Shown piece after piece: positions 3,165 through 62,859 of a stretch of 64,000 nucleotides of DNA; within the stretch, counting starts at the first letter, position 1, and every line of letters starts with the position of its first letter. The stretch is from Kudoa neothunni. Its lineage: Eukaryota; Animalia; Cnidaria. The DNA is taken from positions 3,275,189 to 3,339,188 of the forward strand of contig OZ199840.1 in NCBI GenBank assembly GCA_964304625.1. Reading direction: 5' to 3'. A program made the position numbers and the translations under genes. The notes beneath the pieces were generated by a model that had not been told where the DNA came from, made no database searches, and saw nothing but the letters and a program-made list of their open reading frames with translations.

Positions 3165-3928
3165 ACCTCTATGGTACACAAAAATAACTACACACTCCAA
3201 CGAATTTTAAGAAATTTATACAGAAAGAATTTTGAGAAAAATGTGATTTATTGAGCCAGTTAATCCTACAAAATCCTATTCGGTAGGATTATATAACGTT
3301 CCGTAAATTTTCGGTTAAACAAATAAACAATCTTTCATACTATAAAGAGAGAAATACACATAAAAGAAACAAAAAATTTTGAATATTGAGGCCAATAGAT
3401 TTTTATTTTGAACACTGATTATACTTACTCAAATAATTAAATCGACCAAAATATCCTCACAACTAATGCATCGAGTGTTTATTATTTATCATTTTGGAGA
3501 GTAAAAATTTGCAGAATATTTTCTTAAAGTTTGATTTCATCATTTCGATTTCTTAGGAACAATATGAATCGGATATTTTAGTTACATTCTGATCCTTTGA
3601 TTGTTAACAAGTAATGATTGGTAGAATCGTAATAAATATTATACTGTTTAATTTAAACATCCGAAATTGACTAAAAGCCAAAGAGTTTTCATTCTAAACA
3701 TATAATATCTAGCACGCTTGATTTTATCGTTCAGCGAGCTTGTATCAAGTGTTATATTAGCTTACTGTATTGACTTCTGGAAGATTAACTGGCCCAGTGA
3801 ATCATCTTTTTCTCAAACTTTAGCAGGTAAAAATTTCTTGAAGTTCATATGGCATTTTGAGATATTTTTTTATTAACTATTGTAAAATAAAACCCTGGGG
3901 TCCAAAAGACACCAAGTTCGTTAGAGGG
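3165..3928. mobile_element. Non-autonomous piggyBac-type element (MITE-like), copy 1
   Basis: Flanked by TTAA (3161-3164 and 3929-3932). Ends ACCTCTA...TAGAGGG form short TIRs. Homologous along its length to 9823-10619. Confidence 0.7.
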
Positions 3929-4339
3929 TTAAATATATTTCTTCACTTATATACAGATTTTGAAATATTTAAAAGTTGGATAATTCATAATAAAAATATT
4001 ACTAGTAATTTATATTTTAATGAGGTAATAAATTTTGGTTATTTTAAGTAATCTTGGGATAAGTTTAGTTGCTCAAAGTGATTTTGTCAAAATAATTCTT
4101 GATTAATAAAGTAAATAAGGTTCTAATATTATTCACATATATTTTAATAATTAATGTTGATAAATTTAATTGGTGAACTTTTAATGGGAGACAAATAAAC
4201 AATTATTTAAGAACTTATGCGCTTTTATGAGCTATACACAATTTTTTCAATAAATAAGGAGATTCACAAGTGCTAGCCAACCATATGATTAGTATATTGG
4301 TGCTACTTAACCACATGGTTAATATCGTTTTGGAGAATT

Positions 4340-7420
<3,081 letters not shown>

Positions 7421-9822: not shown

Positions 9823-10619
9823 TCCCTGAAGGCACAAAAATGATTACACTCCAACAAACCTGGAATTTTTTAGACGCCAAGTTTTTATTTTACGATAGCT
9901 AATAAAAAATATTTCGAATTGCCATAAAAATGGTTGGAAATTTCTAGCACCAGAATTTTGAGACAAATGTGATTCATTGGGTCAGTTAATCCTCCAAAAT
10001 CCCATTCGGACCACTTAGATGACATTACGTAAATTTTCGTTTAAAAAACTAACAACTTTTTCATATTATAGAGAAGGAAACCAACATAGAAGAATATATG
10101 AAAGGTTTTTAAGATCAAAGTCAATAGATTGATATTTTAAACACTAATTATATTTATTCGATAAATGAAAATGACAAAAACATTCGTTGCAACTCATTTA
10201 TAGAATGTATATTCCTGGTCATTTTTCAGAGTGATTTCTTCGAGTTAGATTCCATTATTTCTATTTCTGAAGAACAAAATGAATCAGGTGTTTTAATTAA
10301 TTCCTTATCTTTTGATTTTAAATGAAAAATAATTCGGTGATAGAATAATGAATATTATATTAATTAGTCTTAAAACATCAAAAGTTTAAACATTCCCAAA
10401 CCATCACACTCGATTTTAACATTCAACGAACACGTACGAAGTATTTAATAGTTTGCCGAATTGACCTCGATAAGATTAACCGGCCCAATGATTATTGTAT
10501 TTCTCGAAATTCTGCTGGTAGAGAGTTTCTGAAATTTGTAGACCATTTAGAAATATTTGTTTATTAACTATCGTAAAATAAAAACTTGGTGTCTAAAAGA
10601 TTTCAAGTTAGTTAATGGG
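9823..10619. mobile_element. Non-autonomous piggyBac-type element, copy 2
   Basis: TTAA at 9819-9822 and 10620-10623; ends in GGG-TTAA. About 48-bp subterminal inverted repeats (ttttagacgccaagtttttattttacgatagctaataaaaaatattt versus its reverse complement near 10551-10598). Homologous to 3165-3928. Confidence 0.7.
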
Positions 10620-12435
10620 TTAATGACAAATTCGTGGAATGAGTTATAATAAGAATGTTTTTTAGATTTAAACGAAATTATCTGCATACTTAAACTTTTA
10701 ATAATAAACTTAATATAAAAGTTGTCATTCTGCTTTATCCAATCTTTTAGATTACAAAGATTGACGTTTTCGACATTTTATCACAGAATTAGAATCCGAC
10801 GAATTTGAGTAACATCACCACATTGATGATATCGAAAATTTAAATAAGATCACTTTTCGACTCTATGAAATATTCTTTGTTAAAATTAATCCTCTTCGAT
10901 ATCACTCGCACCTACACGACAGCATATTTATTCTTTATTTTGTCGATAGAATGTCGTAAACATTTGAATTATAGTACATAATTTTGTTTACTATTTAATA
11001 AAAAATTTTATCGTCATATAAACTCAAAATCGTCTCGTGTGTAAGGTACATAATATCTTATAATTTAGAATATTCAAAACTTTATTCATTCAATATATTA
11101 AAGCCTTTTATTTGGAAGAATAGATGAAAATATGTTCTTCTTTGATATAAAAATGTATTCGAATTATGTTACAATACACTCAGAAAGTGAAACGTACGTG
11201 AGGACTGTACACGTACAAAAATTTGGGATAGCGTAAAATTGTATTGTCGTGGCTTAAAAAATATTTACAAAGTCGTTAAAAATAATAAAGATTGGATTTA
11301 AATGTTTTATTATTAAGTAAAGAAGATGTGAATAATCACAAGATCATCATAATAGGAATTTATCTTAGAAAAATCTAGGATAGTTTAAGCGTGCAAGTTA
11401 TTATAACGTTAAATGATACTTTAAAAAAAACTTAAAATAACATAAACTTCAGAAATAAAAATTTAGCCACTTTAACGTTAAAATTATTACTCAGAAGCGA
11501 GCTAATCTCTAGTAGATTAAACTTTACAACTAATACTTTTATTATTTGTGTACAGATTTATCTCGGCTTATCCACAATAATGACGAAGAAATATTGATAA
11601 GAAGCTCCGTGATACAAAATGGAAACAAGAATTTTCATTTAATGAGCTGATAATTTAACGAAACCATCAGCACTAAAAAGATCAATTCATAAGGATTTGA
11701 TCGAAAATTCAATGATCGAATAGCCACAATGCCTTAAGATTGTGTAAAGTTGTATGTATCGATCGAGACAAGGTAGATCGTTAAAACAAAAAAATAAATG
11801 AGATTATATTACGAAGACGTTTCGTAGAGCATTATAGATAATTAATTTTTAATGAAATCTCCAAGGTGATTAATAAAAAAATTCTAAGGGTATTGAAATT
11901 TACACTGGAGTTGTGCCAATAATGCGCAGAGATTCGAAAGAATTGAATGTTGTTTTTACTTTTTGAATTTTCAAATTTTATCCTCATTTTTTGAAGGTAC
12001 CTTTGATCATTGATAATTAAATTAAGATAATTTTATTTAATACTATTATTTGTGCAATGATAACTCTGTTTTTCGATTAAATTAACAAATAAATTTATCC
12101 TTAGAATTAATTTCGTGGAGGTTAATGGTAAGCTTGTGTTAACTACCTCTTATTAATATAATATAAAGTGAAATTAAAATTTATTTGTTGATTAAAATTA
12201 ATATAATATCAAATAAATCTATGTTGTAATTTTCAAATTAATCTCTTCAAATGTTTATAAGGTTCAATGAGGATATAAGGGGTTGAACCTCTATTAATTA
12301 TACAAGATTTTAATCTTTATCTCTACGAGAATCAATTTTATAGCAATAATATTAATCTTTTGGAATTGTATAATTTTATTTGAAAGAAAATAGCTCCTAG
12401 CTCAAATAACATCTGTTAGTGTGAAATTTGGTTCG

Positions 12436-17526: not shown

Positions 17527-20430
17527 ATGTATCTTTTATCTTTTCTTATTATTAGCACACGTATTTTCAATGCTTGTTTTGATTTACTTATTAAACTTTA
17601 GTTGTAATTACCGGTTCGGCGGCCGAAAAAGCAGTAGCTGCTAAAGAGGTTTTTTATCAGATAGACAACTCCGATGCAGCTGGTAGAAAAATTCACATTG
17701 AATTAAAAGGTACAGAATATACAAATGAAAAAAAATGTCGCATAATGCAAGGAAAAGATGACGGAACTGACTACATAGAGATTGTTACATGCCAAAACAA
17801 TGAAAGTGGCAACACGGATAAATGTGTGAGGACTTGTGCTGGAAACGACAACAAACTGGAATATTCAAAGCTTTCGCCAAGAGTAAAATACCTATATATA
17901 AAAGATGGAAATGATGCAGATGCTGTTAAAGGTAATGAACATAAAAGCGGAGGAAATGTTTTTGGGCTCGCAATACGTAAGATAAATATTTGATATATAA
18001 ATTTAATATATATATAGCACTTTTGGTAGACCCTAATATAAAGGCATCCACACATAGCGATTATTCATTGAAGTTTATTGTAAAAACTTGTAAGTCAATG
18101 GCATGCCCCATTTATTACAAGGGAATAAAATACAAGGATATCACTGCAATAGACAGTTGTATAACGGCTAATAGTGGTAGCAATGTTAATCTGGTTGAAT
18201 ATGGACAAAAAATTCCATATTATGAAGTGAGGTGCTCTGATTACCCAATGTTCTATTACCATATGCCCAACACTTATATGAAAGAAAATATCGATATTTA
18301 TAAGCCTCATTTCTATGTTAAGTACAAATCTAGTGGAGAAACAACCAAATATTATCTTAAATTCACTAATCCATTACCGAGTGAAATATGTCTATTTGGA
18401 ATAAGAGATGGAGCGGATGTTAATCCAGCCCCCAATCAGTCTGCTTACTCTTCAAATTGTGGAGGAGCCAACAAATCATGCTATGCTCCATGTGACGACG
18501 TAGAACTCAATCTAAATCCTACTAAGCCAATCGTGGATATATTAGTTCAGACTAGGCATCACAAATTAGAAAAAAATACTGATCATTCATATGAGGGATA
18601 TACTTATAAAAAATTTGGTAATAATAACGATTATCGATAATTTATAATTTTTTTAGCTATCATCGAACTAACTGGAGCCGAAAATGCATTTATATCTAAT
18701 ACGGATACCGGAATTAAGATAAATATGCCATTACTTGCACCAACTACAGCTCCTGTTAATGACGTTAAATTTGATCAATGCATTGTCAAATATTATATTG
18801 CAGACACTGTCAAAAATACTGTGTTAACTAACGCGCAATGCTCAACAGGGTCCGATTGTGGAAATTCCTGTAGCGACACGATTACAATCCAAGGTTTGCC
18901 AAAAGGAAAACACATTATGTTCGAAATTGCTCCAAGCAGTATAACTAATTATGCGAATTTTAAGGAATACATTTTCGTCAAAACAAGTAATAAAATAAAA
19001 TTAATTTCTTTAAATTTTTTGCATAAGATAAAAATTCGGAGAAAAATTTCAACACCGCTAAGCCAAGCGCAACAGATACGACTTCTATAATAAAAGCAGT
19101 CGACGAAACTCTAGGAACAGAATCAACTGAGCCAACATGTGACTACTTCGTTAGTAGAGCTGGAAAGAATATTTTCGTTGAAGCAGTATGTGCGGATAGT
19201 AATCCTTGTAGAGGTTTGTGTAAGGAACCCAAAACGCTTATCGATCTCGAGCTCAATACTACCTATGACATCAAGGTGGTCGCTTATTCGGACTATGGTT
19301 TCACCATATTCACTGACATTAAAACAAGTATAATAATTATTATACTTAACGTGTTATTTACAAATATGGTAGAATTTTCGACTCTGACACTCACAAAAAA
19401 AATATTAGACAAAGGTTTTAAGTTGGTCGGTACTCTGTCAACACCAAAAAGCGATGCAAAATGCAATTATAAAATTACAGCAAAAGATGGAGAAACGTGG
19501 GGGACGGTTTATTCGTGCCCTGCTGAATTGTCCAGCCCAGCATTACCGACAGTGTTAAACAATGTTGCAGTTGTTAACACTGCTAGGTCCGGTTCAGGAC
19601 AGCAGCCATCAGTAACTAAGTCTAACAACATTGCGACATGCACTGAAGTACCAAACTGTAATAATATTGTATTCAGTGATGGTTATGATGCTTCAAAGGA
19701 ATATAAAGTTTTGGTCACTGCAATTGACCGATCCGAAGAAACTCCTATTATCATTCAACCAAGTAAATTTAATATCAATATTGTAATACTTAATAAATAA
19801 ATTTATAAATAATTACAACGTTTTTATAATATTAATTCCAACCTGTGCATATAATAATTATTTAGAATCAATAGTTGAAACTCCAACCGATTTGACCAAA
19901 ATAATATTAGTTTATATTGTACGTGATGAGAAGACATTAAAGATAACGACCACATTGCCTGTTGGCAAGAGTGAAGAATCTAGGTGTAAGTGGATATTGA
20001 TTAATTCAAGTGATGTTGCAAGGCCAACCGTAAAAAAATGTATCCGTAGTACAGGTGGCGACTGCACAGCACTTCCAAGTTGTAAAAGCTTCACAATTGA
20101 AAATGTCGAAGATCTAAACGATTATCATTTAATTGTATATCACAGCGGAGATGAGTCTGTATTGGGAACAGCTGAAATAGAACAAGGTAATTACACGCGT
20201 AATTCTTATTTAAATAGTATTATAGGAGCAACTGGAAGTAAATCAACGTAAATTAAACTATTACCTTTATATAATACATTAATTATTTTTTTAGATCTAG
20301 AAATACCACAATGTATTTTGGTGTGTATGATAATACATTAATATATCATTTTAGTATCGCAATATCGGTTGTTGCAGCGATTGTTGTGATTGGAGGAATA
20401 GGAGCATTCATTGCATTCAGGAAAAAATGA
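17527..20430 (+). CDS. Type-I surface membrane protein, paralog A (about 821 aa): signal peptide, seven 4-Cys FN3-like modules, TM helix, 3-aa tail
   Basis: Ten exons (17527-17560, 17602-17976, 18018-18617, 18657-18986, 19028-19327, 19373-19762, 19866-20186, 20226-20247, 20295-20312, 20355-20430) splice into one open frame of 2466 nt. FN3-like motif DLELNTTYDIKVVAYSDYG; TM IIAISVVAAIVVIGGIGAFIAF followed by RKK-stop. Confidence 0.9.
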
Positions 20431-20621
20431 TAGATTCTATTAAATTAACTTTTATTAGAAACACACATTTATTTTTAACTGAGTCCAATTAGAAATTATA
20501 TAGTCTAATATTGATTTTACTGTAGATCAAACAAAAATTTAGAACGAGTGACGCATTTAATCCATTCACATTATCTATTTATATTATGGTTTTATTTTTA
20601 TGCATCATAATTTTATTTAAT
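17602..20621 (+). repeat. About 3-kb direct duplication, partner at 29542-32570
   Basis: Line-by-line near-identity at a constant offset of 11,940 bp through exons and introns; small indels only in intron 8 and the 3' UTR. Confidence 0.97.
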
Positions 20622-20742
20622 TTTTATACGAACAAAAAGTGGTGTTAATTAATTTGTTGTATTGAAGACATTACTTTATCCAAAGTTCATTAATACGTTA
20701 GCGTTAATTTTAACATTAAAATGTAAGAAACTTTTTTACAAA

Positions 20743-22926
20743 CCTATTACGCATAACAAAAAAACTTAACAGGTATTATTATATTGTTTCCTGTTATTAA
20801 AGTGTATTTATTCGGTGTCAGCTTTAATTTATTTGTATTTTAATCCACATTTCTATTATTTTAGTTAGCAATATTAAAAATTATTTATTTCAAATTCACT
20901 TCTACCGTATGTTCCAACCGTCATAAACTTCACGTATCGTTCAATAAAAAACCATAGACAAAAAATATGTTTAAATTAATTTCATTGAGAGCCACAGTTT
21001 AAACGAATAATGTTTTTCTTTGAATTTTCATTACAAACACTTCGATCAGATAAGTGACGGACTTGCTTGTTTCTACTACAATACTGATAGGAGGACACAA
21101 ACGACATCGTTTTCATTGATTATTTTCTTGGTTTTCCGCTGGAGGATCACTTATTTTGATAAATTCGAAACCAACTATTTCCAATGTTCTTTTAACATCA
21201 GGCTGATTGTAAAAAAATGCAGTTTTATATCTCCTTTCCTGCTCGGGCTTAATTAATGACAAGGACAAATCCATGAGAAATTGTTGGTAACGATTTGACT
21301 TGTTTGTGTCACAATAATCGGGATTGCCACGAATAAAGACAACAAACGCATTTAACTCAGCTATATCAAGAATTTGACAAAATACAATGAACGGCCACTT
21401 TCTACATTTTCTTTTACATGTGTAGGTGGCAACACGTTGATCCAAAGTGTCAACGCCACATCTCTGTACATTATAATCCAAGATTGCTTTTGGAGTACGA
21501 TGCTCCGAAGAAAGAACTATTACAGCCTTATTTTTCCTCGGTACATAAGAAATTAAGGTAAATGACTTAAAGAAACAAAATAAAGATGAAAATATCTTTT
21601 AAGAGTTATTTGGTTGAAATTCAGGTGGAATAAATGTTCGACATTTGCGTACCGCACCAAGAATGGACGTTTTTCTTTCTCGCAAATATAGAGCTAGCTT
21701 TCAGGAAGTGAAATAATTATCACATGTAATAATTCTTCCCGAGTCCAACAAATGTAGAGTCAAATCAATAACAAATTTTACAACTTAGATTTGTTTCAAG
21801 GCACTCATCAATTTTACCCAAGTAAGGTAAAATATTGCCTACACAACGCGTTTGACTATCACATACGATCAAAAACTTAAACCCATATTTGGAAGGTTTT
21901 TTTGGCATGTAAACAAGAAATGATACACGCCCTCGGAACGGCTATAGTTGTTCATCTACGGCCATATTAGGTTCAAAGATGTAACTATTTCTACAGATTT
22001 CAGAAAAATTTCCAAACAGTTTATTGATGGGGGAAAATTTAACACCTGAATTTGAGAACTTTTTAAGCTTTCAATATTCATCAAAGCGCAAACAATTTAA
22101 GATTTTTCGAAATCTCATTTCACACATAGTGACGCGAAATAATGGTCTTCCGTGAAGTTCATGCCACAGAATCCTGGTATTCTCTAGATTTGATTTATAG
22201 GAACCAGCCAATAACAGCAATCCTAAGAAAGCTTTTAATTCGATGCAATCCAAGCGTTTCCACGAATCATTACATTTTTCAAGACCCTTACGGTTTGTGA
22301 ACGATAAAAATTCTTCGAGAATCTCTCCTCGTATAAAATGCGAATATGAGCTCAATATGGTTATTGTGTCGAATGTTTCAATACGTTTTCCTTTCTCTAG
22401 GTCATTATTGATTATATTTTGATTCTCAGTTCGTCCAGATATGGGTTTTGGAGACCAGATTAATGATTTGTCTTTTGAAATATAAGAAGTGGAACTTATA
22501 CTATTTTCATCCATTAGAGTGCATTCGTCTGTAGTGTCAATATCATCTATATGTAGACATATAATGCAACATCCTTCAAAATTGAAATTACTCGTTGATT
22601 TAGTATTACAAAATTTAGGTTCACTTTCTATCTGCTGTAACTATTCAATTTCACCTGAAGATACACTGTCTGCATCAGAAGAAGCCATTATTGCTGGACA
22701 ATATAACGTGTTGGGAAAATCATGTTAACATTTTGGACTAAAAATGACCGTATTTGATATTTGTTTACTTAATAATAAGCACATCTGTATCTAAACAGCT
22801 TAATATGAGATAAATTTTTTTTATGATTTTAAGTGAAATCCGGAGTGAAAATGATTAAAATTGACTAATTTAAAGCGAGTTTTATTCGAAAGTGCACTCA
22901 TGGAGTCCAGAGGTAATGTTTAAGGG
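20743..22926 (-). mobile_element. Decayed piggyBac (PGBD4-like) transposon, one end truncated
   Basis: Minus-strand fragments ELKAFLGLLLLAG, RPLFRVTM..RFRKILNCLRFD, VDEQL, KYGF/LKF, DYNVQRCGVDTLDQ, RKWPFIVF. The end GGG-TTAA lies at 22924-22930. Homologous to 60175-62560. Confidence 0.93.
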
Positions 22927-24299
22927 TTAATAAATACTATAAAATAGTCACACTGGAAAAAAGTAGATATATCATAATTAGACAGAAATGTATGGATGCA
23001 TTTGAATGTGTAATTCTCAACGTTGATCGAATGTAAAATTACACAAAACAATGTTTCAGTGAAATTAAGTAACTATTCTATCAATAATTTAGTGAAATAT
23101 TAGATTAATAATATTTCTGCAACTGAAATTATTGGAAAGGTGGGCGGTCTACTATTTTTGAATTAAATTTTTTTAAATGATTTTTGTGTATCTTGACACG
23201 GTGTTAAATTCTGCTTATGATGTTTAACACCTGTATTAGCTCAGCAATAATAAACGTAACGTTATTTCTTAATATTAGATTTACCATAGCTAGAAAGTGA
23301 CTCTTGTTAAGATTAAAAATCTTTTACCTATACAGTTTTAATTGTTTGAAAAATCATACTCGTTGTAAAAACCAAAAAATTTAATTCTTTGATTCATTAG
23401 ATGTAAAAATAAGAATTAAATTCTCAAGTTTAAAATAAAAATTTAAATTGCAGATAAACAAATTGATAAAGATATTCTTGTTTGTTACGCCTGTCAACTA
23501 GGAGTTAATTAATCCATTATGGTTGATGAATGAAAAATTTTTAAATTATGAAGGTGAGTTTTCTTTTGTGAACTTTGAATATACGTGAATGAGTTTTTTC
23601 TATAGTTTTTATTCTGTTACACCTTTATCTAATTCTAATTTAGATAACTGTCTTAAAATTAATATTTAGTATCTTTCATTTTTCTTTGAACTATACAAAT
23701 TAAAATTGAAAGCGAGCTGTCGCTATAAATGTTTAGCAAATATCCAAGGATTGAAAATGAGTAGATTAGATCCAACAATTAAATTTTCGTTCATTACAAA
23801 AAACACTCGACTTAGCCATTTAGGATTTGAAATTTTGGCTGCCTCCCTGAACACTTAAGCATCACAACGAGTCTAATATAACCTCTTAAATTATCTTTTT
23901 GTTTGGGTGTGGAAAGTTAAACGATTAAAACCGTGCTATTAAAATAAACACCTCCAAAAACCATATCGCTCCCAGAACATTGACTTTGTAGAGTCTGCAA
24001 GAAAATTTTTATTACCTCATGCATCCCAACTTTTCCTACTTGACTGAACTAAAGCTGGGGGTGCATTACACATTAAGATGGTACATCTCAGTCACTTTTT
24101 TTGCAATATTTAAAATTCTAAATGCAATCAACGTGAGCGCATTTTGATTAAGATTGATCAAAATACAACCCCTCAAATAAATTTTTCAAATGTAAACATA
24201 TTTCTTTAAGCAATTAAATGAATGCGTGTTGATAATGTTGCCACAAATATAAAGTTATATTGTCCTTGTTTTAAGTTTTATTTAAGGATAACAATACAA

Positions 24300-25200
24300 A
24301 TAAACACTTTGCAACTAAAATGGTTGATTGCAAATCCAATTTCTGGGCGAATTTGGAAAAGGCATTTAGAAACAGACGTGTACGAATATAATGCAAAAGA
24401 AGGTAGTAGTGTTACAAAATTGAATGAAGCGCAAAAACTACAGATTCATGATTGGATGAGTTAAGATTGGAGTGTAACATTGAGCGCCATCTTAAAAAAG
24501 TTAGAGAACACTTTGATTCCAATATTTTTAGGCAAAGAATTGGCAACCTCCTGAATCCTTTTCATTACACCTTGAAAAGGTATCAGTTGCTCCTATAAGT
24601 AGATATACTCAAGACCATATTAAATCGACAAAACTGTTCATGTTTTTGTTAAATAATTGAATAAATAAAGCTATGTTCTTGAGTTTCATAAAAGAAAAAA
24701 AAATTATTATCCAGTCGTGTACGTAGACTTGTCTAATTTTTCATCTTGAATGAGGCGAAATTTCGGTCGAGCTGTTTCAGAGTCAAAAGAAAACCCTAAA
24801 GTAAGAAGCATCCGATCTAAGAATATAACTTTGATTGCTGTAATAAGCTCGGTTAGGGTTTGGAAGTTTCAGTTGGAATGTGGATCGGTTGACCCACAAA
24901 TTGTTTCAGCTTTTAGGGAATATTTATCTAATGCTGGATGGTGCGAAAAGAATTTCATTAGTAATGGACAATGTGAGGTTCCATAAAACCGATCTAATAT
25001 TATAACAAATGAAAGCTAATAATCATAGACTTTTTTTCTTTAATCATATTTTTCATTTCTAATAGATTGAGATGTTGCTTTACCAAATCAAGCGAATTGC
25101 TAGGAATAGGAATCCACAAAATTACTAAAAATTGTGTAACTCTATTATGGAGGGTCTAGTTGAAGAAGTAATTTTTAAATTACTTTAATCACTAAGATTC
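24300..25200 (+). mobile_element. Decayed Tc1/IS630-like transposase remnant
   Basis: Fragments KLNEAQKLQIHDWM, FHYTLKR and MRRNFGRAV..VRSIRSKNITLIAVIS, with many stops and frameshifts; boundaries approximate. Confidence 0.7.
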
Positions 25201-27379
25201 TTACTTTACAAAATGTTAAATTTCTATAGACATTTACAAATAGCAAATAAATAACTATTTACTTGAAATTTTAATTTCGATTAGTCAGGCGCCTTTCGTT
25301 ACGATATAAACAAGATCCCCGTGCTAGTTGCCCTTCGATCGAATGCATCTCTTTTTTAAACATGAAATATTGTTTTATGGAATAGGATCAAACAGTGCAA
25401 AAGCAGTGGCAGTGAGCTTTTCGAGGCTGAGAATTGAATAAGTAACCTCCATAGTCGCACTGAATGTGTCAGGAAATCTACCATAAGTCTATCATTAATT
25501 CAACTTCGTAGCATTACTGTCGTCATTCATTTTGATGGAAACACGTTTTCCCAACTGTGTATAAGTAGTGCTAACGAAAAAGAATGGTTCAATGTATACA
25601 TTTTCATAAATATTTTAAAATATAATTAATAAACTAATAATAAATGTTTGGAAAAAAATAATTAACATATTAGTATGCGCATTTAACTTAAATATTAAAT
25701 AATTAATAATTGAAACAATTATGGGTGTTTTGAAGCCAGGAATAATTAAAATAAAATACAAAAAAATATTTCGAACATGGGGTGTGTTAAATGAACTCGG
25801 TATTTTTATCGTTATACTCCAAATTCATACATAAATATTGAAATTTTTGTCATATACATTTATTACACTTTATTGACAAAAATTAATAAAACTCGATGGA
25901 AATTACATCGTAAATTACTAAGCTATATAAATAAAATCATTTAGAACTCCCAGACAAATTTTTATAGGTTTTAAAAGGTGCCAAATAATAATTCATATTT
26001 AAAATTTATTTTTACCTAAATTAATTATGGAACTACCCCATTTGATACCAACATTAAATAAATCTAGGAGCAAACGAGCTTACTCAAATATGTGGTTACC
26101 ATCGCAGGAGGAACGAATAAAAAATATCGAATGTTGAACACATTTATTTTTAATTCAGAAAATAGGCTTAGTATCAGAATTCTTTTAATCACATGCGGCT
26201 TATACTGACCAATATTGTTAGTTACATGGCTGAGATTTTCCAAAGTATTTTATTTATTGAAATGAACTTAGCAAAGAGACAACTTCATATTAATTTTTAG
26301 CTGAGTTACATTTTTGGGGACATTCAGGGATTAGTGCTAAGAAACTAAAATTTATAAAATTATCATGATTCAGTATAAATATATTACATTAATTGTTTTT
26401 GTATGCTTTTAAAATGTATTGTTAATAAGTTTATCTTAAATTGAGACGCGAAATATGAAACAATTAGGTCAGATTTTTATGGGTTATATGTTAGTATGTT
26501 CTTTTCATCGCTTCAATATTGCTTCATTCCTATTTGTACCGATGCCTTGTTGCGTTTATATCAGTAGAATGATCCACATTAGCATGTATGTATTAATCAA
26601 AATCAAATTGATGTACTCAGCCCAGAAATCTGTCCTCATTATTAATCCGAGTTGAACATTTTGAATTATTATTCTTTCAAGAGTTATTTGATCTAGGATA
26701 ATTCTTAGGATTTGAAAAATAATTCCATATGAATCTATAGCCCCAACAGTCCATGTTTTAATTAACTAAAACTTTTTCACGACATTATTTACCTTTAAAA
26801 ATCTAGAACTCGTCATTTTAAATTATTATTTCATGACCTCCTATTCTTTTTTTATGTATATCAAAGCAATAAATGTAAAATTATCTGATATAATTCCTAC
26901 AGTCACCAGTTATACAATTGTATTATCGGAACCTATTCGTAATTGTTTCTACAGTTGTGGATATCAGAAACTTCCAAATACAGAAATACAAGGATTTGAT
27001 AAAAAATTAGTTTTAAACCAATAAAAAATGCCTCTTTTTCTGGTTGAAATTCATTTTTAAATGTTGGACATTTTAGTCAATATTTATCAATAATTATTTC
27101 TTTTTTACCAGCATTAGTTCGTTGCAATTCTTTCATATTCTCTCTTTGAGAACTAATTTTGGTCTCTGTAGCGATGATATTTATTTTATCGTATCAATCT
27201 AAATTTCAAAAAAGTGTTCTAATTAAAAAATCATCAATATTATTGCAAGTAACCTCCGTCACGTATAATTTCCATGTAGATTTGGAAGAAGACAAAGAAT
27301 TGCATTTAATTGTAAATTAGCCTAAATTTCATTGAATAAGATAGCTCTTTATCTGGTAGAATGTAGTTTTAATTACTTT

Positions 27380-28617
27380 GGACCAAGAAACAATACCGTC
27401 TAAACTACGAGAACAGATGTACAACTTATTTAAAAATCGGAGGAGTGAGTTCATACTGCTGTCCAGATACGTCAGATTTGATCTTCATGTTGGTTCATTC
27501 TACCAAAATTTAGGAATAGAAGGACTCTTGAGCCGGGACCTGTAGACGAAAATAAGCAACCGGCCTTTTTCCTGAAAAAAACTGTAAATTATTAGTCAGG
27601 TTTAGGAAATTCCCATAATTTCCTTAAAAAGACATTAAAAAATAAATTTTATATGGATTTTTGAACTTTATTTTCGCTTATTACAATCGATTTATTTATT
27701 TAATGATTTTATTGTGCTCTAAAGTTAAGATAATAATATTAATAACCAAGAGAAGAAAACACAAAAATAAACTTGATAAAAAGAAAGAATATGCAGAGAT
27801 GTTTAGGAGACTATAAACGACTGTTTCTCATGAGAGTATTGTGTTCCCTGACGAAATTTGATTCTCTGTTGTAACAAGACCTACGATGCGTAGTACAATG
27901 GAAGGAATGTCCGTCTACTGCTTTATTTCGGCACCCAATAGATTCAATTTTTCTTTTTTTTTGCAGTAAACAAAAATGGAATCTTTTACAGCAGCATAAA
28001 CACGAGGTGATTTTAGGGAAAGATTTTATGATATGTTCAGAAGAGATTACAAAATCTTACACCATGCGAAGGGTGCACAAACAAAATTCTCTCATAGGTA
28101 GCTCCAAAATATACCATTACATATTTTTAAAAGATTTTATAGCCAAGGAAATATTCAAATATGATATTTAATAAGTTAGATTCCTTTTCTTAATCCAATT
28201 GAAAATGATTTCTTTGCTTAGAAGAATACACGTTATGCGCAGAAAGTGTAAAGGTTAGCTCGAATTAATAGTGGTAATTAAAGATTATTTTGAAGAAATT
28301 TGTCCACAGCAATGCGATAGGTTCTATCTAAAATATTGGGCCATATTGTAACGTATTAACGAAGAGTAATTATTCTAGGATAAATAATACAAATATTGAA
28401 TTTGGAATTTTTATTATTTTAATATGGTGAGGAATTCATTAATACTTTTTTTAATGTAAAAAATTAATTTTGATTAAAGAGCTAGTAAAGTAATGATATT
28501 TAATGTTTAAATATAAATTTGTGTGAAAGAACATGACTCAGAATATTTTATATTATTATTCCAACACAATTTTTTGGATATGTACACTAATTTTGTGAAA
28601 TTTGAAGTTACTCATAG
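27380..28617 (+). mobile_element. Decayed Tc1/IS630-like element ending at a TA run
   Basis: Remnants of IVFxDE.FSVVTRP and SFLNPIENDF (YSPFLNPIE-like motif). A TIR-like end abuts (TA)n; boundaries approximate. Confidence 0.65.
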
Positions 28618-28640
28618 TATATATATATATATATATATAT
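28618..28640. repeat. (TA)n microsatellite
   Basis: Directly visible. Confidence 0.95.
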
Positions 28641-29454
28641 CATTTTTATAATTGTTGTAGATTAAAATTTAAATTTAAAATTACTTGAAAACAATTTTAA
28701 TGTTTTCGTATGAATTTTTGTTAGATCGAAAAAATGCCGGCTTCAATAGAAACCCCCTAATTCACTAATGATGAGTCATAAAAAAGTGAAAATCTGTTAC
28801 AAAATTTGAACAACAAATAATCGTTAAAAAAGTGAAATTACGAACTTGAAAAAATGATAACTATTATTTGTATATTTTAATAACAAAAAAATAAATTATT
28901 AATACTTAATATACGATATTTTCTCAAGAGAACACTAAAAAAATTGTAAAGAAACGTACCAAAATGACTTTTCGAATACGCATGGCAAACATAGCCAATT
29001 TTAAATGACTACAAATTTTGAATAATAATTATTCTTGGTTTATTAATATCATGGAAAAAATGTGGCCGTTTAAAAACTTTGATTTAATAAAAATCTCCTT
29101 AAATACTTTTATAGATTAGAAATCAAAATTTGTTATAAACATTTTGTAGTATTAACTCCGGAAAAAAATTATAAATGATTAAATAATTTTCCGAAAAATA
29201 TCCATTACGTTTAGAATAATCGATCCATATTACAAACATCTTAATATTGTACTATAATATAAGCATTTAAAAAATATCTATTAATTATTTAGTTTCGTAT
29301 GTATATTAAACTTGAATGTGAATAGGTTCTTATAGTATCAAAACATAGCAAAGCACTTCGCGATTATTCGAATGCATTCATCAATTTATTTTGAATAGGT
29401 TTTATAAAGTTCACAACAGAGAAATAATACAGATTAACCGTTATTGTATTTGTA

Positions 29455-32369
29455 ATGGTGGGGAAGAAGGACCTTATAACGTTACTCATTGGTGTATCAC
29501 GTACATATAAATACCTGTGTTATTTATTTACAAAAATTTAGTTACAGCTACCCATTTGGCAGCCGAAACTCCAGCCGCTACTAGAGAAGTTTTCTATCAA
29601 ATCGACGCCTCCCATTCATCCAATAGAAAAATTCACATTGAATTAAAAGGAACAGAATATACAAATGAAAGGAAATGTCGAATAATGCGAGAAAAAGCTG
29701 ACGGAAGTGCCTTCGAGGAGATTAACACATGCCAGAGTAACGAGGCTGATAATAGCGGCAAATGTGTAAGGCCTTGTGCTGGAAGCAACAACAAACTGGA
29801 ATATTCAAAGCTTTCGCCGAGAGTAAAATACCTATATATAAAAGATGGAAACGCTGCCGGCCAAATAAACGCAGAAACTCATAAAAGAGGAGGAAATGTT
29901 TTTGGGCTCGCAATACGTAAGATAAATATTTGATATATAAATTTAATATATATTTAGCACTTTTGGTAGACCCCAATATAAAGGCATCCACACATAGCGA
30001 TTATTCATTGAAGTTTATTGTAAAAACTTGTAAGTCAATGGCATGCCCCATTTATTACAAGGGAATAAAATACAAGGATATCACTGCAATAGACAGTTGC
30101 GCAACATCTAGAAGTGCGATTGATGATCATTTGTTTGAATATGGGCAAAAAATCCCTTATTATGAAGTGAGATGCAGCGATTACCCAATGTTCTATTACC
30201 ATATGCCCAACACTTATATGAAAGAAGATATCGATATTTATAAGCCTCAATTCTATGTTAAGTACAAATCTAGTCTAGAAACAACCAAATATTATCTTAA
30301 ATTCACTAATCCATTACCGAGTGAAATATGTCTTTTTGGAATAAGAGATGGAGCGGATGTTTCTAATGCCGCCGATCGGCCAGCTTATATTTCAGATTGC
30401 GGTGGGACCAAAAAATCATGCTATGCTCCATGTGACGACGTAGAACTCAATCTAAATCCTACTAAGCCAATCGTGGATATATTAGTTCAGACTAGGCATC
30501 ACAAATTAGAAAAAAATACTGATCATTCATATGAGGGATATACTTATAAAAAATTTGGTAATAATAACGATTATCGATAATTTATAATTTTTTTAGCTAT
30601 CATCGAACTAACTGGAGCCGAAAATGCATTTATATCTAATACGGATACCGGAATTAAGATAAATATGCCATTACTTGCACCAACTACTGCGGGTGCCGCT
30701 GTTGTTGCTTTTAATCAATGTAAAATCAAGTACTATATTGCAGACACTGTCAAAAATCCGGCATTGATCAATGCACAATGCTCATCTAGTCAAAATTGTC
30801 CGAGTGAATGTAGCGCTGTTAGGACAATTCAAAATTTACCCGAAGGAAAACACATTATGTTAGAAATTGCTCCAAGCAGTATAACTAATTATGCGAATTT
30901 TAAGGAATACATTTTCGTCAAAACAAGTAATAAAATAAAATTAATTTCTTTAAATTTTTTGCATAAGATAAAAATTCGGAGAAAAATTTCAACACCGCTA
31001 AGCCAAGCGCAACAGATACGACTTCTATAATAAAAGCAGTCGACGAAACTCTAGGAACAGAATCAACTGAGCCAACATGTGACTACTTCGTTAGTAGAGC
31101 TGGAAAGAATATTTTCGTTGAAGCAGTATGTGCGGATAGTAATCCTTGTAGAGGTTTGTGTAAGGAACCCAAAACGCTTATCGATCTCGAGCTCAATACT
31201 ACCTATGACATCAAGGTGGTCGCTTATTCGGACTATGGTTTCACCATATTCACTGACATTAAAACAAGTATAATAATTATTATACTTAACGTGTTATTTA
31301 CAAATATGGTAGAATTTTCGACTCTGACACTCACAAAAAAAATATTAGACAAAGGTTTTAAGTTGGTCGGTACTCTGTCAACACCAAAAAGCGATGCAAA
31401 ATGCAATTATAAAATTACAGCAAAAGATGGAGAAACGTGGGGGACGGTTTATTCGTGTCCTGCTGAATTGTCCAGCTCAGCATTACCGACAGTGTTAAAC
31501 GATGTTGCAGTTGTTAACATTGCTAGGTCCGGTTCAGGACAGCAGCCATCAGTAACTAAGTCTAACAACATTGCGACATGCACTGAAGTACCAACCTGTA
31601 ATAATATTGTATTCAGTGATGGTTATGATGCTTCAAAGGAATATAAAGTTTTGGTCACTGCAATTGACCGATCCGAAGAAACTCCTATTATCATTCAACC
31701 AAGTAAATTTAATATCAATATTGTAATACTTAATAAATAAATTTATAAATAATTACAACGTTTTTATAATATTAATTCCAACCTGTGCATATAATAATTA
31801 TTTAGAACCAATAGTTGAAACTCCAACCGATTTGACCAAAATAATATTAGTTTATATTGTACGTGATGAGAAGACATTAAAGATAACGACCACATTGCCT
31901 GTTGGCAAGAGTGAAGAATCTAGGTGTAAGTGGATATTGATTAATTCAAGTGATGTTGCAAGGCCAACCGTAAAAAAATGTATCCGTAATACAGATGGCG
32001 ACTGCACGGCACTTCCAAGTTGTAAAAGCTTCACAATTGAAAATGTCGAAGATCTAAACGATTATCATTTAATTGTATATCACAGCGGGGATGAGTCTGT
32101 ATTGGGAACAGCTGAAATAGAACAAGGTAATTACACGCGTAATTCTTATTTAAATAGTATTATAGGAGCAACTGGAAGTAAATCAACGTAAATTAAACTA
32201 TTACCTTTATATAATACATTAATTATTTTTTAGATCTAGAAATACCACAATGTATTTTGGTGTGTATGATAATACATTAATATATCATTTTAGTATCGCA
32301 ATATCGGTTGTTGCAGCGATTGTTGTGATTGGAGGAATAGGAGCATTCATTGCATTCAGGAAAAAATGA
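29455..32369 (+). CDS. Type-I surface membrane protein, paralog B (about 825 aa)
   Basis: Same 10-exon structure as paralog A with an intact frame. Different leader (MVGKKDLITLLIGVSLTATHLAA); identical TM and tail. Confidence 0.9.
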
Positions 32370-37702: not shown

Positions 37703-38556
37703 TCAGATATCTTCTGATAAAATAACTGTTATGTCGGCGTTGGAATTTGGAAAGTGGTCCTTTTCGTTAGGATGGACGTATACTGTGGCATCTTTTATAA
37801 AAAAGGTGTTAAAGTTGAATCGAGACGAATCAAGTGCTGTTTCTATCACACAATACTCTGCCACACACCCACACACATACACGTCGGTTATTAGATTGTC
37901 CAGAAGAATACCGAGAATAGGGCTCTTTTCGATCTTTAAATTGTCCTGAAAGGCTGAATATGATTCCAACCATGGATTCATACCTTTTTCCACTATATAA
38001 ACTTGTTGGGGTGAATTTTTAATCTATAATAAACAAATATTAAGATGGTTAATTGTACAACAATTATACTATGTGAAGAGAAGATGAAAACTCGGCGCCT
38101 GAACTTCCAATTATACAATGAACAGGCCATTGAGTTGTTTTGGTTCTTATACTCCCAAGTTCAAGGGGAAGTTGAAATAAACATGTCTCAAACATTTTAA
38201 CATCGTTTTTACCGTCACCATCAACCGACACACCGTTATACTGTTTGTAATTGGTGAAAAACGAAATGTGCGAAGGGGGATGCCAATCTTTGGTGTACAC
38301 CACGACATCAAATTCTTTCTGTTTGTCCTTTAGTAGCGAATTTATATTTTGAATGACAGAAATGTGGTCGTCCTTAGTTGCTAGTGACCCTGTTAAAAAA
38401 TCGTTCTGAACATCCACCACAATAAGACATTTTTTTGTTTCAGTATTATTCTTCTACAAAAACGGATTATAACAGTTGCTTCAATTTAATGTTTAATAGA
38501 ATGAACGTCTTAAAGTTTTTGTTAATAGGAACCTTTATATATTATTTGATACGCAT
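37703..38556 (-). CDS. Nicotinamidase/pyrazinamidase (isochorismatase family)
   Basis: CLIVVDVQNDF, DWHPPSHISF, WPVHC..GSSGAEF, EKG..ESYSAF, VYVCG..EYCV.ETALDS. The 5' end (ATG at 38556 plus a 2-nt microexon) is tentative; the secure part is 37703-38453. Confidence 0.92.
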
Positions 38557-44709: not shown

Positions 44710-46680
44710 ATGGTTTGCTTTCCCAAAGCAATGAATAAAATTCATTCATTTTTCAAAAAGTTCTTTCTAATATCAATGATACTCATGAAAAGATTTTCTT
44801 CCAAATGTACTATTATGCTAACTCTACATCTTGGGCTAAAAATGATAGAATTTATTTTGGCCTATTACGTTGGCAATCTAGCTAGTTTGTATTACATGGT
44901 TATACCAATGAATTCAACAAGCGATTTTACAAAAGTTGTGTTGATTTCATTTCTATTAGTATCTATTATGGCGTTGATACTAGCGTTAAATGAAATGGTT
45001 AAATTACATATTCAGGCTAGTGCTAGGAAAAATTTGACCAAGTATCTTCAGACCATATACGTGCAGCCGTCAATATTCTACAAAGTGAATGTGACATGGA
45101 CTAATTTCCATCCTGATCAAGCTATGAGTCAAGACGTGGATAAACTCTGCGATGGGTTCATCCTAATCACAAGCGGCCTCATATGCACTCCTTTTATTCT
45201 TACTTTTTATACCTACCTGTGTTCGATGTCGTTCGGCTCCGCAAAAACCTTTATTGTCTACTGTTACAGCATAGGTTTTATTATTATTGGAAAATTGATT
45301 CTGATACCATTATCGATGACTTATTACCATTTGGAACGGTGTGAAGGTGATCTTCGTAGCAAACACTCAAAACTCAGGGAGTACCACGAAGAAATCGAAC
45401 TTCTAAAAGGACACCAAGTCGAAAAAGATATACTAAACAAAAAGTATCTTTTCAAATTGCACTTCAGATCACTCATTTTTTAAATACAGTTTAAGATATA
45501 TTTGTTGTAATTTTTTAAATAAATCATATTCAGGGCTGATACTATCTACATATTAATGTCACGAATAGCAAATAAATTCTTTGGAGTGAAACTAAATGTG
45601 TCAATAAATAGTTATTTTGGCGCAATCCTTGCATACATAATGATAGGATCTTATGCTATAACTAATGGCATAATCATGGAGGCACCAACTATCAGTTCTA
45701 CCTCCTTCTACACATTGTATTTGGTGCATATACTTAGTACTATTGTCAAATTAATTTCCACCGCTGCTTCGCTAGAGGGGAACGTTCATAGAGTTGGTAA
45801 ATTGATTCACATTATAAAGACAAGCCGACCTAACGAAACATCTTATAATGAAACGCCTGAAGCAACTAACGTGATAGAAAATCTCCATAATAGATGTGAA
45901 TATCAGGGTATTAATCCTGAGAAACTACTTCAAGTAACTCGACTATCATTTACACTCCCTGGAACGGATAGATTTCTGGGTTCCAACTACACCTTTACAG
46001 TTTACGAACATCAAAGTTTCGGAATTTATGGCCCCTCTGGTATTTTTATAATAAACCCGAAATAAATTTATCAATAATATTTTTAAGGGATCGGAAAATC
46101 AGTTCTACTAAAAAATATTGTTTCGCTGATAGAAAACACTCAAGATACTCCTCCGGCTTGGTCCCTTAAGCTTAGAGAACCGCATGCTATAATTTATCTA
46201 CCACAAAGAAGCTACTTTTCTGAAGGATCAGTCTATTGTCAACTAGCCTATCCATATATATATTTGATGAATGATCCTAATTTTACAGCTAGAGCGAATT
46301 CGTGTCTTAGATTGGTGGAACTTGAAAACCTTATTGACTGCAAGGATGCTCACCAGCTTGGCGACAACGTGGACAAACTCTCGCCTGGAGAAAAACAACG
46401 TTTGCTGATGGCACGCATATTGTTTCTTCAACCGAAGCTTGCCAGTAAATAATATTTCAACTGCTTTTATTGATTTTAAAATGTTATTTTAGTTGTCGAC
46501 GAACCTACGTCATCTCTATCTCTTGAAGTTGCAGTGAATTTGTTTAATCTTTGCATTGAACGTGGTGTCACGTTCATTACAATATGTCATGATATTGAAG
46601 TTTTAAAAAGAACGCACAGAACCATTCTTTCAATGACTTCCACGTCCTATACTATTTCTAATATTGCAAGCAACGTTTGA
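44710..46680 (+). CDS. ABCD4: ABCD4-like half ABC transporter (lysosomal cobalamin exporter family)
   Basis: HPDQAMSQDVDKLC, TPFILTFYTYLC, EGDLRSKHSKLR..EE; Walker A GPSG|IGKSS, signature LSPGEKQRL, Walker B IVDEPTSSL; three introns. Confidence 0.88.
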
Positions 46681-50300: not shown

Positions 50301-51128
50301 GATATTCTTATGAAGATTGTCTTGTGGTTGCACTTCTTGATTGGTTTAAAAGTAAGCATGATACTTTGTCTAATGATTGTAATGAAACGCTAGATGAATT
50401 TATAATATTACTTACTGATTCACCTATCTGTTCGTTTTGCCAGAAAAACATGTATTTTAAAAAGTCAACCGCTCCTAATTCGATAGAAAAAATGAATAGC
50501 GCTGAAATTACTGATACCTTTACCTGTGAACAATGTCGTATTCAACACCGTTTTCCACGTTACATTAATCCCTTATCAATTATCGGTAAATATAAAATTT
50601 TACGTTTTAATTTGATTTTTTAAAAAGATACAAAAATTGGTAATCGTAAAGAATTTGCGATTGCATTTACGTGTATATGTCGAGTGTTTGATCTACACGT
50701 TCGATATGTGGTAGATATCTCTGGTTTCGTTTGGAATGAGGTTTATTCGAGCAATTTTAAACGATGGATACATGTTGATTGTTGTGAGAATTTCTATGAC
50801 AAACCACTCATTTATGAGGATGAATGGGGAAAAATCTTTAAATGCACCCTAGCCTATTCTTATTCCGAAGTAAAGGATATCACTTACCGTTACACCAAAA
50901 ATCCCACGACAATTATATACGAGCGGAGCAGGTATTTCAATAAAATGCTCCAATTTCTCATTAATAATATTAACAATACAGTAATAGATTCACATAAAAC
51001 TAAATTTATACCTAATGTTCCATGATATGTAGTTAAAGGAGCGATTTTGTGACAAAGATCGACTGAATTCTTCTGAGATGTCCGCACGTGAAGATATCGA
51101 AATGATTTTTCGTGAAAAACAGCCATGA
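47321..51128 (+). CDS. Thioredoxin-like + PUB + peptide:N-glycanase (NGLY1-like) protein with substituted catalytic residues
   Basis: Thioredoxin-fold N-terminus (..FLKVGTRRCP..LDNKIKSH); PUB (RSISLISEEF..PGCVNTMLLIGFE); core LLDWFK, CSFC, CEQC, RFPRYINP, VWNEVYS..RWIHVDCCE..DKPLIYE.EWGK. Contains a ~1.8-kb intron at 48084-49920. Confidence 0.85.
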
Positions 51129-62560: not shown

Positions 62561-62859
62561 TTAATTTTGATTTATTAGTCATTTTCTCATAATAAATTTA
62601 AGTAAATCATTATTTGCATTAAGGTAAATTCATTATTTCAATATATAAATTAATTAACTTCATTGCTAACATTTTCTTAAATTTATTACGCGAATATAAA
62701 CATTGTTCAATAATTTCAATAATATTCATTCATGTTTTCAAAAAGATTGTGTAATAGTTGGAACTTATTTCCATGTATTGAACGAAGCCATTCTTACTGT
62801 AAATAGCTCTCAAATTTGGTATCACTTACTCCTCTTTTGATTCTCCATATTTTAAGTTT

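Follow-up and report, generated by a model that had tools for sequence, protein, structure and literature searches.

Large repertoires of variable surface proteins are known from parasitic protists, among them the trypanosome VSGs, the var, rif, stevor and pir genes of Plasmodium and the VSPs of Giardia. These repertoires comprise hundreds of paralogs in arrays, some near chromosome ends, whose products carry a signal peptide, a variable distal part, a conserved membrane-proximal part and a short tail, and mosaic genes are formed by non-allelic recombination. In myxozoans, which are cnidarian parasites of fish, antigenic variation during development has been reported with the mechanism unknown, and VSP-like and RIFIN/STEVOR-like genes have been proposed to encode variable surface proteins in Sphaerospora molnari (10.64898/2026.02.11.705288). 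In cnidarians, the allorecognition proteins of the Alr1/Alr2 family of Hydractinia are single-pass proteins encoded by a multigene family with one domain per exon, and include a disulfide-bearing Fn3-like domain (PMC9546547). Finally, old duplicates that are homogenised by gene conversion except at short regions where difference is favoured have been described for exon 5 of the red/green opsins, for RHD/RHCE and for the clustered protocadherins (PMC3924837).

The window analysed here, a stretch of 64,000 nucleotides (contig OZ199840.1, positions 3,275,189 to 3,339,188, assembly GCA_964304625.1), derives from Kudoa neothunni, a myxozoan parasite of tuna with a genome of 40.2 Mb on 3 chromosomes. 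It contains two paralogous genes, A and B (Table 1), both intact, with GT-AG boundaries at all introns and equal exon lengths from exon 2 onward. As read from the sequence, both encode type I membrane proteins consisting of a signal peptide, seven four-cysteine FN3-like domains, a transmembrane (TM) helix and a 3-residue tail. The original prediction, made from the sequence alone, had described a pair of 10-exon genes 11,940 bp apart with nearly identical introns, divergence in sharp blocks of exons 2 to 4 and about 7 amino acid changes in exons 6 and 7, and this observation is confirmed, the counts being exact. The number of amino acid differences is 40/124 in exon 2, 22/199 in exon 3, 24/109 in exon 4, 0/99 in exon 5, 4/129 in exon 6 and 3/106 in exon 7, whereas exons 8–10 are identical. 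Introns 2–9 differ by one substitution in intron 2 and by the length of one T-run in intron 8. The divergent patches are separated by identical tracts of 125, 275 and 595 bp.

Table 1. Positions of genes A and B and of their parts within the 64,000-nucleotide window.
Feature	Position	Strand	Description
Gene A	17527..20430	+	10 exons, 821 aa, 28 Cys in seven 4-Cys FN3-like domains
A exon 1	17527..17560	+	Start of signal peptide; with its promoter belongs to an older lineage than B and L003
A exon 2	17602..17976	+	Domain 1, most distal; predicted seven-stranded FN3/C2-type sandwich (pLDDT 82)
A exon 3	18018..18617	+	Domains 2 and 3 (model residues about 1-85 and 94-199; pLDDT 59); divergent patches at about 18160-18238 and 18422-18472
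A exon 4	18657..18986	+	Domain 4; divergent patch 18748-18922, where B groups with L003
Identical tract	18923..19517	+	595 bp identical between A and B: end of exon 4, intron 4, exon 5, intron 5, start of exon 6
A exon 5	19028..19327	+	Domain 5
A exons 6 and 7	19373..20186	+	Domains 6 and 7; exon 6 19373-19762, exon 7 19866-20186
A exons 8-10	20226..20430	+	22-nt and 18-nt micro-exons (stalk), TM helix with IGGIG motif, RKK tail
3' flank of A	20431..20722	+	Shared with B: near-identical for about 200 nt, then decaying; end of the converted tract
Gene B	29455..32369	+	10 exons, 825 aa; exon 1 29455-29500, exon 2 29542-29916, exons 3-8 = A + 11,940, exons 9-10 = A + 11,939
B promoter, exon 1 and intron 1	29142..29541	+	83% identical to paralog L003 (G000:C2:7.335 Mb), about 61% to A

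In structure models, domain 1 resembles the FN3 domain of IFNAR1 (best Z 6.2, r.m.s.d. 3.1 over 86 residues) and domain 3 reaches a Z of 6.4 (r.m.s.d. 3.1 over 83 residues), while domains 2 and 3 together match tandem FN3 domains. However, Z values below 8 indicate a common fold only, and the exon 3 model is of low confidence. The best structural matches are FN3 domains of cytokine receptors and adhesion molecules, and a search of the ESM Atlas gave only generic FN3 leads. At the sequence level, none of the single exons of gene A matches a Pfam profile, whereas domain 5 is matched by the Pfam fn3 profile in 12 of 22 family members (best E 9.8e-5). Domains 4, 6 and 7 were assigned by their cysteine pattern and weak profile similarity. 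Profile-profile comparison of the domains with each other was likewise weak (best E 0.004, exon 4 against exon 5), so that their common origin rests on cysteine spacing and folds. A tail of 3–4 basic residues was found in all 18 distinct genes whose last exon was recovered, which argues against a signalling receptor.

A feature that had escaped the original prediction is that A and B belong to a family of at least about 250 genes located on all three chromosomes. A motif scan of the genome gave 251 hits against 4 in the control, and 267–528 first-look candidates were obtained per exon. The 150th hit for exon 3 still had an E value of 3e-48, and 148 of 150 exon 3 hits and 147 of 150 exon 5 hits are free of stop codons. 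Homologs were found only in unannotated contigs from four other samples; the public runs examined included SRR31175926, SRR33849685 and SRR33529766. The possibility that only two copies exist, named beforehand as a condition that would refute the interpretation, is thus strongly excluded, and the system is a genome-wide repertoire rather than a two-gene switch.

Equally undetected before was the history of the 5' ends. Exon 1 and the promoter of A and B are far diverged (about 61% identity in AT-rich DNA), while those of B are 83% identical to those of L003, a third paralog on another chromosome. Three-way site patterns switch along the gene: in the 5' region, 137 sites group B with L003 against 26 grouping A with B, in the bin 18800–18899 of the exon 4 patch the counts are 24 against 9, and from 19000 to 19499 they are 74 against 0. 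Hence, the promoter and exon 4 patch of B group with L003, but its framework groups with A. Synonymous divergence is 0.4–0.6 in the distal patches, as high as against a third paralog, and 0 in exon 5. The longest stretch without a synonymous difference comprises 174 codons, a length reached by none of 10,000 permutations. A recent duplication followed by positive selection can be rejected, since synonymous sites are diverged in the patches and dN/dS there is below 1 (0.29–0.56). A single crossover chimera can be rejected as well, because identical and divergent tracts alternate several times. A search of the assembly for an identical donor of the exon 4 patches, the only patches searched in this way, found none, so that there is no sign of VSG-like cassette copying for this pair.

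The gradient from homogenised proximal to divergent distal parts recurs in other close paralog sets. The proportion of synonymous differences (distal/proximal) is 0.25/0.006 for A and B, 0.28/0.00 for the paralogs L051 and L052, 0.12/0.013 for L018 and L019, 0.13/0.013 for L007 and L008, and 0.48/0.11 for L060 and L061. In 15 close pairs it amounts to 0.20/0.039, compared to 0.72/0.70 in 242 distant pairs, although these values derive from the 34 genes modelled, which were chosen by closeness to A, the pairs are not independent and the distant pairs are near saturation. The same pattern is found between chromosomes (L017 against L018/L019). Of the 86 differences between A and B, 59 lie in the most variable third of alignment columns computed without A, B and L003 (p 2e-15). 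Moreover, 7 of 108 positions in predicted strands differ, compared to 55 of 215 non-strand positions (p 2e-5). Variable residues thus lie mostly outside predicted strands, in predicted loops, with exposure judged from secondary structure and hydrophobicity and not from computed accessibility.

The interpretation offered by the original prediction, an old duplication continually homogenised by gene conversion while selection keeps the exposed distal loops different, as in antigenic-variation or allorecognition families, is supported in part. What the data demonstrate is the architecture, a rod of seven disulfide-stapled FN3-like domains on a single TM anchor in a non-signalling surface protein, the size of the family with its mostly stop-free copies in the exons checked, an ancient split between A and B, and the later overwriting of most of the gene by non-allelic gene conversion from which the loop-coding patches of domains 1–4 escaped; the recurrence of this gradient in other paralog sets and the mosaic nature of the arrays are equally established. 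By contrast, it is inferred that conversion ran mainly from B to A, since A keeps an outlying promoter, exon 1 and patches, and that tracts erasing distal differences were removed by selection for a diverse exposed surface while proximal tracts were tolerated. Selection is deduced solely from resistance to conversion. Also inferred, and by analogy only, is the function, including expression, switching and immune recognition: the repertoire may serve as a variant surface coat, with individual parasite cells or stages showing subsets of members to escape fish antibody or cellular recognition, and conversion may shuffle loops between neighbours to make new mosaics. Confidence in the evolutionary mechanism is high, whereas immune evasion, given this mechanism, is only slightly more likely than not, and the explanation as a whole is about as likely as not. 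No RNA run was found to hold the stretch, and the genome study obtained too few parasite RNA reads (PMC12239612). Furthermore, Kudoa spends long periods inside muscle cells, which lowers antibody pressure. More tentatively, a myxozoan, and thus an animal, may have independently evolved an antigenic-variation system on the scale of VSG or var from tandem four-cysteine FN3 modules, comprising several hundred genes expressed one or a few at a time and diversified by conversion between neighbours, which would be shared by other marine-fish myxozoans and missed so far because it is masked as repeat DNA.

Among the alternatives, a diversified repertoire of adhesins or host-ligand receptors survives best, although it is considered unlikely. 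In this case, members would be specific for stages or tissues (fish muscle, fish entry, annelid host) and distal loops would differ because they bind different host molecules, not to escape immunity. FN3 rods with variable loops are typical binding platforms, and the modest structural matches (Z about 6) to cytokine-receptor and adhesion-molecule domains, the purifying selection on distal parts, the presence of deep, stable subfamilies with different promoters and the conservation of domain order in other organisms are in line with this view. However, hundreds of copies in a genome with about 5,300 other predicted genes, together with mosaic shuffling within arrays, are more than a fixed set of ligands would need.

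Less probable still is a self or kin recognition code among parasite cells, in which homophilic, variant-specific binding as in Hydractinia Alr, clustered protocadherins or sDscam would be used in cell-in-cell development or plasmodium fusion. The cnidarian lineage, the one-domain-per-exon organisation and the constant base with a variable tip speak for such a role, conversion of proximal exons is also known for protocadherin clusters (cited in PMC3924837), and the conserved IGGIG motif of the TM helix could support dimer formation. Against it stand the lack of a V-set or I-set Ig domain as in Alr, the lack of a cytoplasmic signalling tail and the dispersal of copies over three chromosomes rather than in one complex.

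Neutral concerted evolution, in which loops diverged under relaxed constraint, fell below the identity needed for conversion and stay divergent without selection on their differences, appears very unlikely. It agrees with a dN/dS below 1 and with the coincidence of the patches with the least constrained positions. However, introns 2–9 and a family-variable stretch of exon 6 are homogenised while the short coding patches between them are not, which speaks against simple escape of fast-evolving DNA, the proximal-distal asymmetry repeats across subfamilies, and hundreds of intact copies are left unexplained. An assembly artefact, either haplotypes placed in tandem or consensus mixing at about 7x coverage in an assembly that needed purging of haplotypic duplication (PMC12239612), can be all but dismissed, since the 5' flanks are not allelic, 3' identity ends within 300 bp, A-specific DNA has a depth of 6.1 and 4.9 in public runs of the sample compared to 10.7–13.1 and 8.8–9.3 for shared tracts, contigs of one run (X2) break exactly at 18747 and 18923, both A and B letters are read, and the same pattern occurs between chromosomes. 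Shared tracts thus have twice the read depth, and the two refuting conditions named beforehand, uncollapsed haplotypes and a framework homogenised by polishing, fail.

The published annotation of the genome lists 5,316 proteins after repeat masking (PMC12239612). A family of 250 or more genes would equal about 5% of this number and roughly 2% of the genome, and it appears to be undescribed, as literature searches, which did not extend to subscription papers or the annotation files of the genome's authors, found no description of it. Myxozoans cause major losses in fish, and no repertoire of this size is known, to the best of current knowledge, from an animal parasite. If the family forms the surface coat, the homogenised proximal domains 5–7 would be natural candidates for diagnostics or vaccines.

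Like the protist repertoires, the Kudoa family comprises hundreds of paralogs in arrays, some near chromosome ends, with a signal peptide, a variable distal part, a conserved membrane-proximal part and a short tail, and with mosaic formation by non-allelic recombination. Comparison with the protist repertoires revealed no relation in sequence or fold, and the Kudoa proteins are built of seven intron-separated FN3-like modules and occur in an animal. A large repertoire of intact surface-protein paralogs, and diversity concentrated in distal, presumably exposed parts and shuffled by recombination, are two features of an antigenic-variation system, to which mutually exclusive or switching expression and variant-specific host immune recognition would also belong. 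Membership in the Giardia or diplomonad VSPs fails: the signal peptide, single TM helix and short conserved C-terminus are present, but A and B contain 3.4% cysteine and neither CXC nor CXXC motifs, compared to a cysteine content of over 10% (at least 5% in the S. molnari screen) and more than five such motifs required by the definition. The S. molnari proteins likewise possess a signal peptide, a cysteine-containing ectodomain, one TM helix and a basic C-terminal tail. However, they comprise 18 VSPs defined by high cysteine content and CXC/CXXC motifs, fibronectin domains are never mentioned in the preprint, and the Kudoa family is more than ten times larger. Membership in the Alr family fails as well, since the domain 1 model has seven strands with best matches of FN3/C2-type, as inferred from fold matches of Z about 6 and not from direct comparison with Alr sequences, and the short basic tail contrasts with the cytoplasmic tail of Alr, which often carries ITAM/ITIM motifs. 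The evolutionary signature is that of the opsin, RHD/RHCE and protocadherin genes, of which the Kudoa family provides an unusually clean example: here the peaks of divergence under gene conversion repeat across many pairs of a several-hundred-gene parasite family with a consistent proximal-distal polarity.

The assembly harboring the window comprises 40,260,978 bases in 4 contigs and the window itself has a GC content of about 29%. The published genome of Kudoa neothunni, a myxozoan recovered from yellowfin tuna data, comprises 40.2 Mb on three chromosomes and a mitochondrion with 30.4% GC, and was obtained at a k-mer coverage of about seven, with 5,316 proteins predicted after RepeatModeler masking and without transcript support (PMC12239612).

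Both paralogous genes, A and B, are intact, display ten exons separated by GT-AG introns of 39-103 nt and encode 821 and 825 residues, respectively. All counts of the original prediction, which had described two ten-exon paralogs with a homogenised framework and divergent patches, were reproduced, and the observation is real. Exons 2-7 are phase 1-1 modules, and each of the seven domains carries four cysteines, 28 in all. Differences between the two genes are clustered, with tracts of 125, 275 and 595 identical bases alternating with four divergent patches. The positions of these patches and of further features of the window and the genome are listed in the following table.

Positions of features in the window and elsewhere in the assembly (G000, the K. 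neothunni assembly; C2 and C3, two of its contigs; window positions unless a contig is named)
Feature	Position	Strand	Remarks
Window	G000:C3:3,275,189-3,339,188		
Divergent patch between A and B	about 17602-17948		
Divergent patch between A and B	about 18160-18238		
Divergent patch between A and B	about 18422-18472		
Divergent patch between A and B (exon 4)	about 18748-18922		
Two short upstream motifs, GAAT(A/G)(G/T) and xxGATT(A/T)A	about -90 to -50 and -45 to -15 from the ATG of family members; in B about 29393 and 29430; in A 17489		
Exon 1 of B compared with paralog L003	29455-29500		B has GGG where L003 has its start ATG and uses an ATG six bases upstream that L003 lacks
Two decayed piggyBac-like elements (PF13843)	20777-22931 and 60383-62565		85.6% identical; the first starts about 55 bp after the end of A/B homology
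Pair of related 700-bp elements	3180-3932 and 9846-10623		69% identical, each with internal inverted similarity; probably non-autonomous DNA transposons
hAT-like transposase remnants	57805-59110	+	weak DUF4371/DUF659 matches
ORF with a Kunitz domain	54615-55082	+	domain followed by a Thr-rich and Ser/Asp/Glu-rich stretch
Pieces of housekeeping genes	5936-6385, 38064-38420, 44710-46065, 50186-51025	-, -, +, +	methylmalonyl-CoA mutase, an isochorismatase-family enzyme, an ABCD-type transporter and a transglutaminase-like (PNGase-type) protein
Family array	C3:9.75-9.86 Mb		nearest neighbour of a gene changes from window to window
L056/L029 (family loci)	G000:C2:10.200-10.203 Mb		a gene that breaks off in exon 4 is followed by a second partial exon 2 and broken exon 3; a partial tandem copy or cassette-like fragment
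Family member near the SNF5 gene	L065:1942-7201 (unrelated sample) and G000:C3:1,355,653-1,362,288		within 3-6 kb of SNF5 in both, but on opposite sides of it; may be old synteny or chance

The repeated segment is only 3.2 kb long, and neither the 8.7 kb between the genes nor the outer flanks have a counterpart at the other gene. In contigs of four public runs of one sample, A-specific upstream DNA has a depth of 6.1 (run X1) and 4.9 (run X2), in contrast to 10.7-13.1 and 8.8-9.3 for tracts shared by A and B. Moreover, contigs of X2 end exactly at the borders of the exon-4 patch, and both A and B letters are read at single-site differences. However, none of the listed contigs spans both genes, the runs are probably of the sample that was assembled, and depth alone cannot distinguish whether the unique DNA is haploid or diploid, so that the argument against haplotigs is carried by the non-allelic flanks.

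Searches and structure predictions were carried out exon by exon, whereas the spliced proteins were joined only for translation and counts. The predicted fold of exon 2 is a seven-stranded sandwich (pLDDT 82), the best matches of which are mostly FN3 domains of cytokine receptors (Z 6.2, r.m.s.d. 3.1, 86 residues). Exon 3 gives two predicted sandwiches (pLDDT 59), the second of which matches FN3 domains (Z 6.4), and exon 5 matches Pfam fn3 in 12 of 22 members. These scores indicate a common fold and not a function. The C-terminus is formed by a TM helix with a conserved IGGIG-like motif, followed by a tail of three or four mostly basic residues in every member read.

A DNA search with the whole gene revealed about 20 further full-length paralogs. 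In protein searches, exon 3 had 528 candidates, and among the best 150 scored places the last hit was still 45% identical at E 3e-48; exons 2, 5 and 6 had 267, 377 and 326 candidates, respectively, and likewise filled all 150 scored places. A 24-nt degenerate motif from exon 3 gave 251 hits against 4 for the reversed control. About 250 members can therefore be taken as a floor, and 250-380 as likely, which makes the family much larger than could be seen from the window. Members lie on all three chromosomes, many of them in arrays, and 148 of the best 150 exon-3 hits and 147 of the best 150 exon-5 hits have no stop. Frameshifts would not show in this count, however, and 5 of about 21 close relatives have broken exons. 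Close paralogs with frameshifts or stops in one or more exons are L004, L012, L015, L016 and L022, some of which may reflect sequence errors at about 7x coverage. The modelled members share exon number, order and phase. The two short upstream motifs were each found in 9 of 13 divergent members at the positions listed, against 5-8% of background windows. Since they were picked by eye on the same data, they represent only a lead and could be a family-specific regulatory element or a general Kudoa promoter.

Within the patches, A and B differ at 0.38-0.58 of synonymous sites, about as much as either differs from L003, a third paralog on C2, whereas in exon 5 they differ at none. Promoter and exon 1 of B are 83% identical to L003 and about 61% identical to A. 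Sites grouping B with L003 dominate upstream (137 against 26) and in the exon-4 patch (24 against 9), while the framework groups A with B (74 against 0 over window positions 19000-19499). It can be concluded that A and B split before B and L003 did, and that most of the gene was later made identical by several conversion tracts, for which a direction from B into A is inferred to be probable. The same polarity is displayed by the paralog pairs L051/L052, L018/L019, L007/L008, L017/L018 and L060/L061. Close pairs average a pS of 0.20 in exons 2-4 and 0.039 in exons 5-6, compared to 0.72 and 0.70 in distant pairs. One pair, L010/L011, is a plain recent duplicate. Differences between A and B fall in columns that vary across the rest of the family, mostly outside predicted strands and at polar residues. 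Since dN/dS in the patches is 0.29-0.56, selection is inferred from the escape from conversion, the signature described for opsins and RH genes (PMC3924837).

An exon-3 profile searched against 1.84 billion representatives found 18 proteins, all of them from ENA or Logan contigs and none from NCBI or UniRef. Those traced come from four samples, ERZ28624939 (record prefix RIIS20, possibly belonging to the codfish gut metagenomes of PMC7054092), SRR31175926, SRR33849685 and SRR33529766, three of which hold several different members. Exon order is kept in contigs of 17-29% GC, next to eukaryotic genes in short pieces, and the source organisms are inferred to be probably other fish myxozoans. The absence from named proteomes suggests either a lineage-restricted family or missed annotation.

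Taken together, the sequence data establish a large, diverse and mostly intact repertoire of tail-less rods of predicted FN3-like domains with a homogenised base and divergent tips, from which it is inferred that diversity at the tip is favoured. The interpretation in the original prediction, an old duplication homogenised by gene conversion with selection keeping exposed loops different in an antigenic-variation or allorecognition family, is partly supported, since the evolutionary mechanism is well supported while any function is inferred from sequence alone. The most likely use, held with about even confidence, would be a variant surface coat against fish immunity. A repertoire of adhesins for host ligands is possible but less likely, and a role in kin recognition is doubtful. 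A purely neutral escape is improbable, since the homogenisation of introns and of a variable part of exon 6 speaks against it, and an assembly artefact is very unlikely.

The family appears to be undescribed, as no description was found in the literature searched. The genome preprint of the myxozoan Sphaerospora molnari reports other surface families and does not mention fibronectin domains, and the K. neothunni paper (PMC12239612) does not use the word 'surface'. In its organisation the family looks like the VSG, var and VSP repertoires. However, with 3.4% Cys and neither CXC nor CXXC motifs it does not qualify as a VSP family, and with no Ig V/I-set domains and no signalling tail found it does not qualify as a member of the Alr family.
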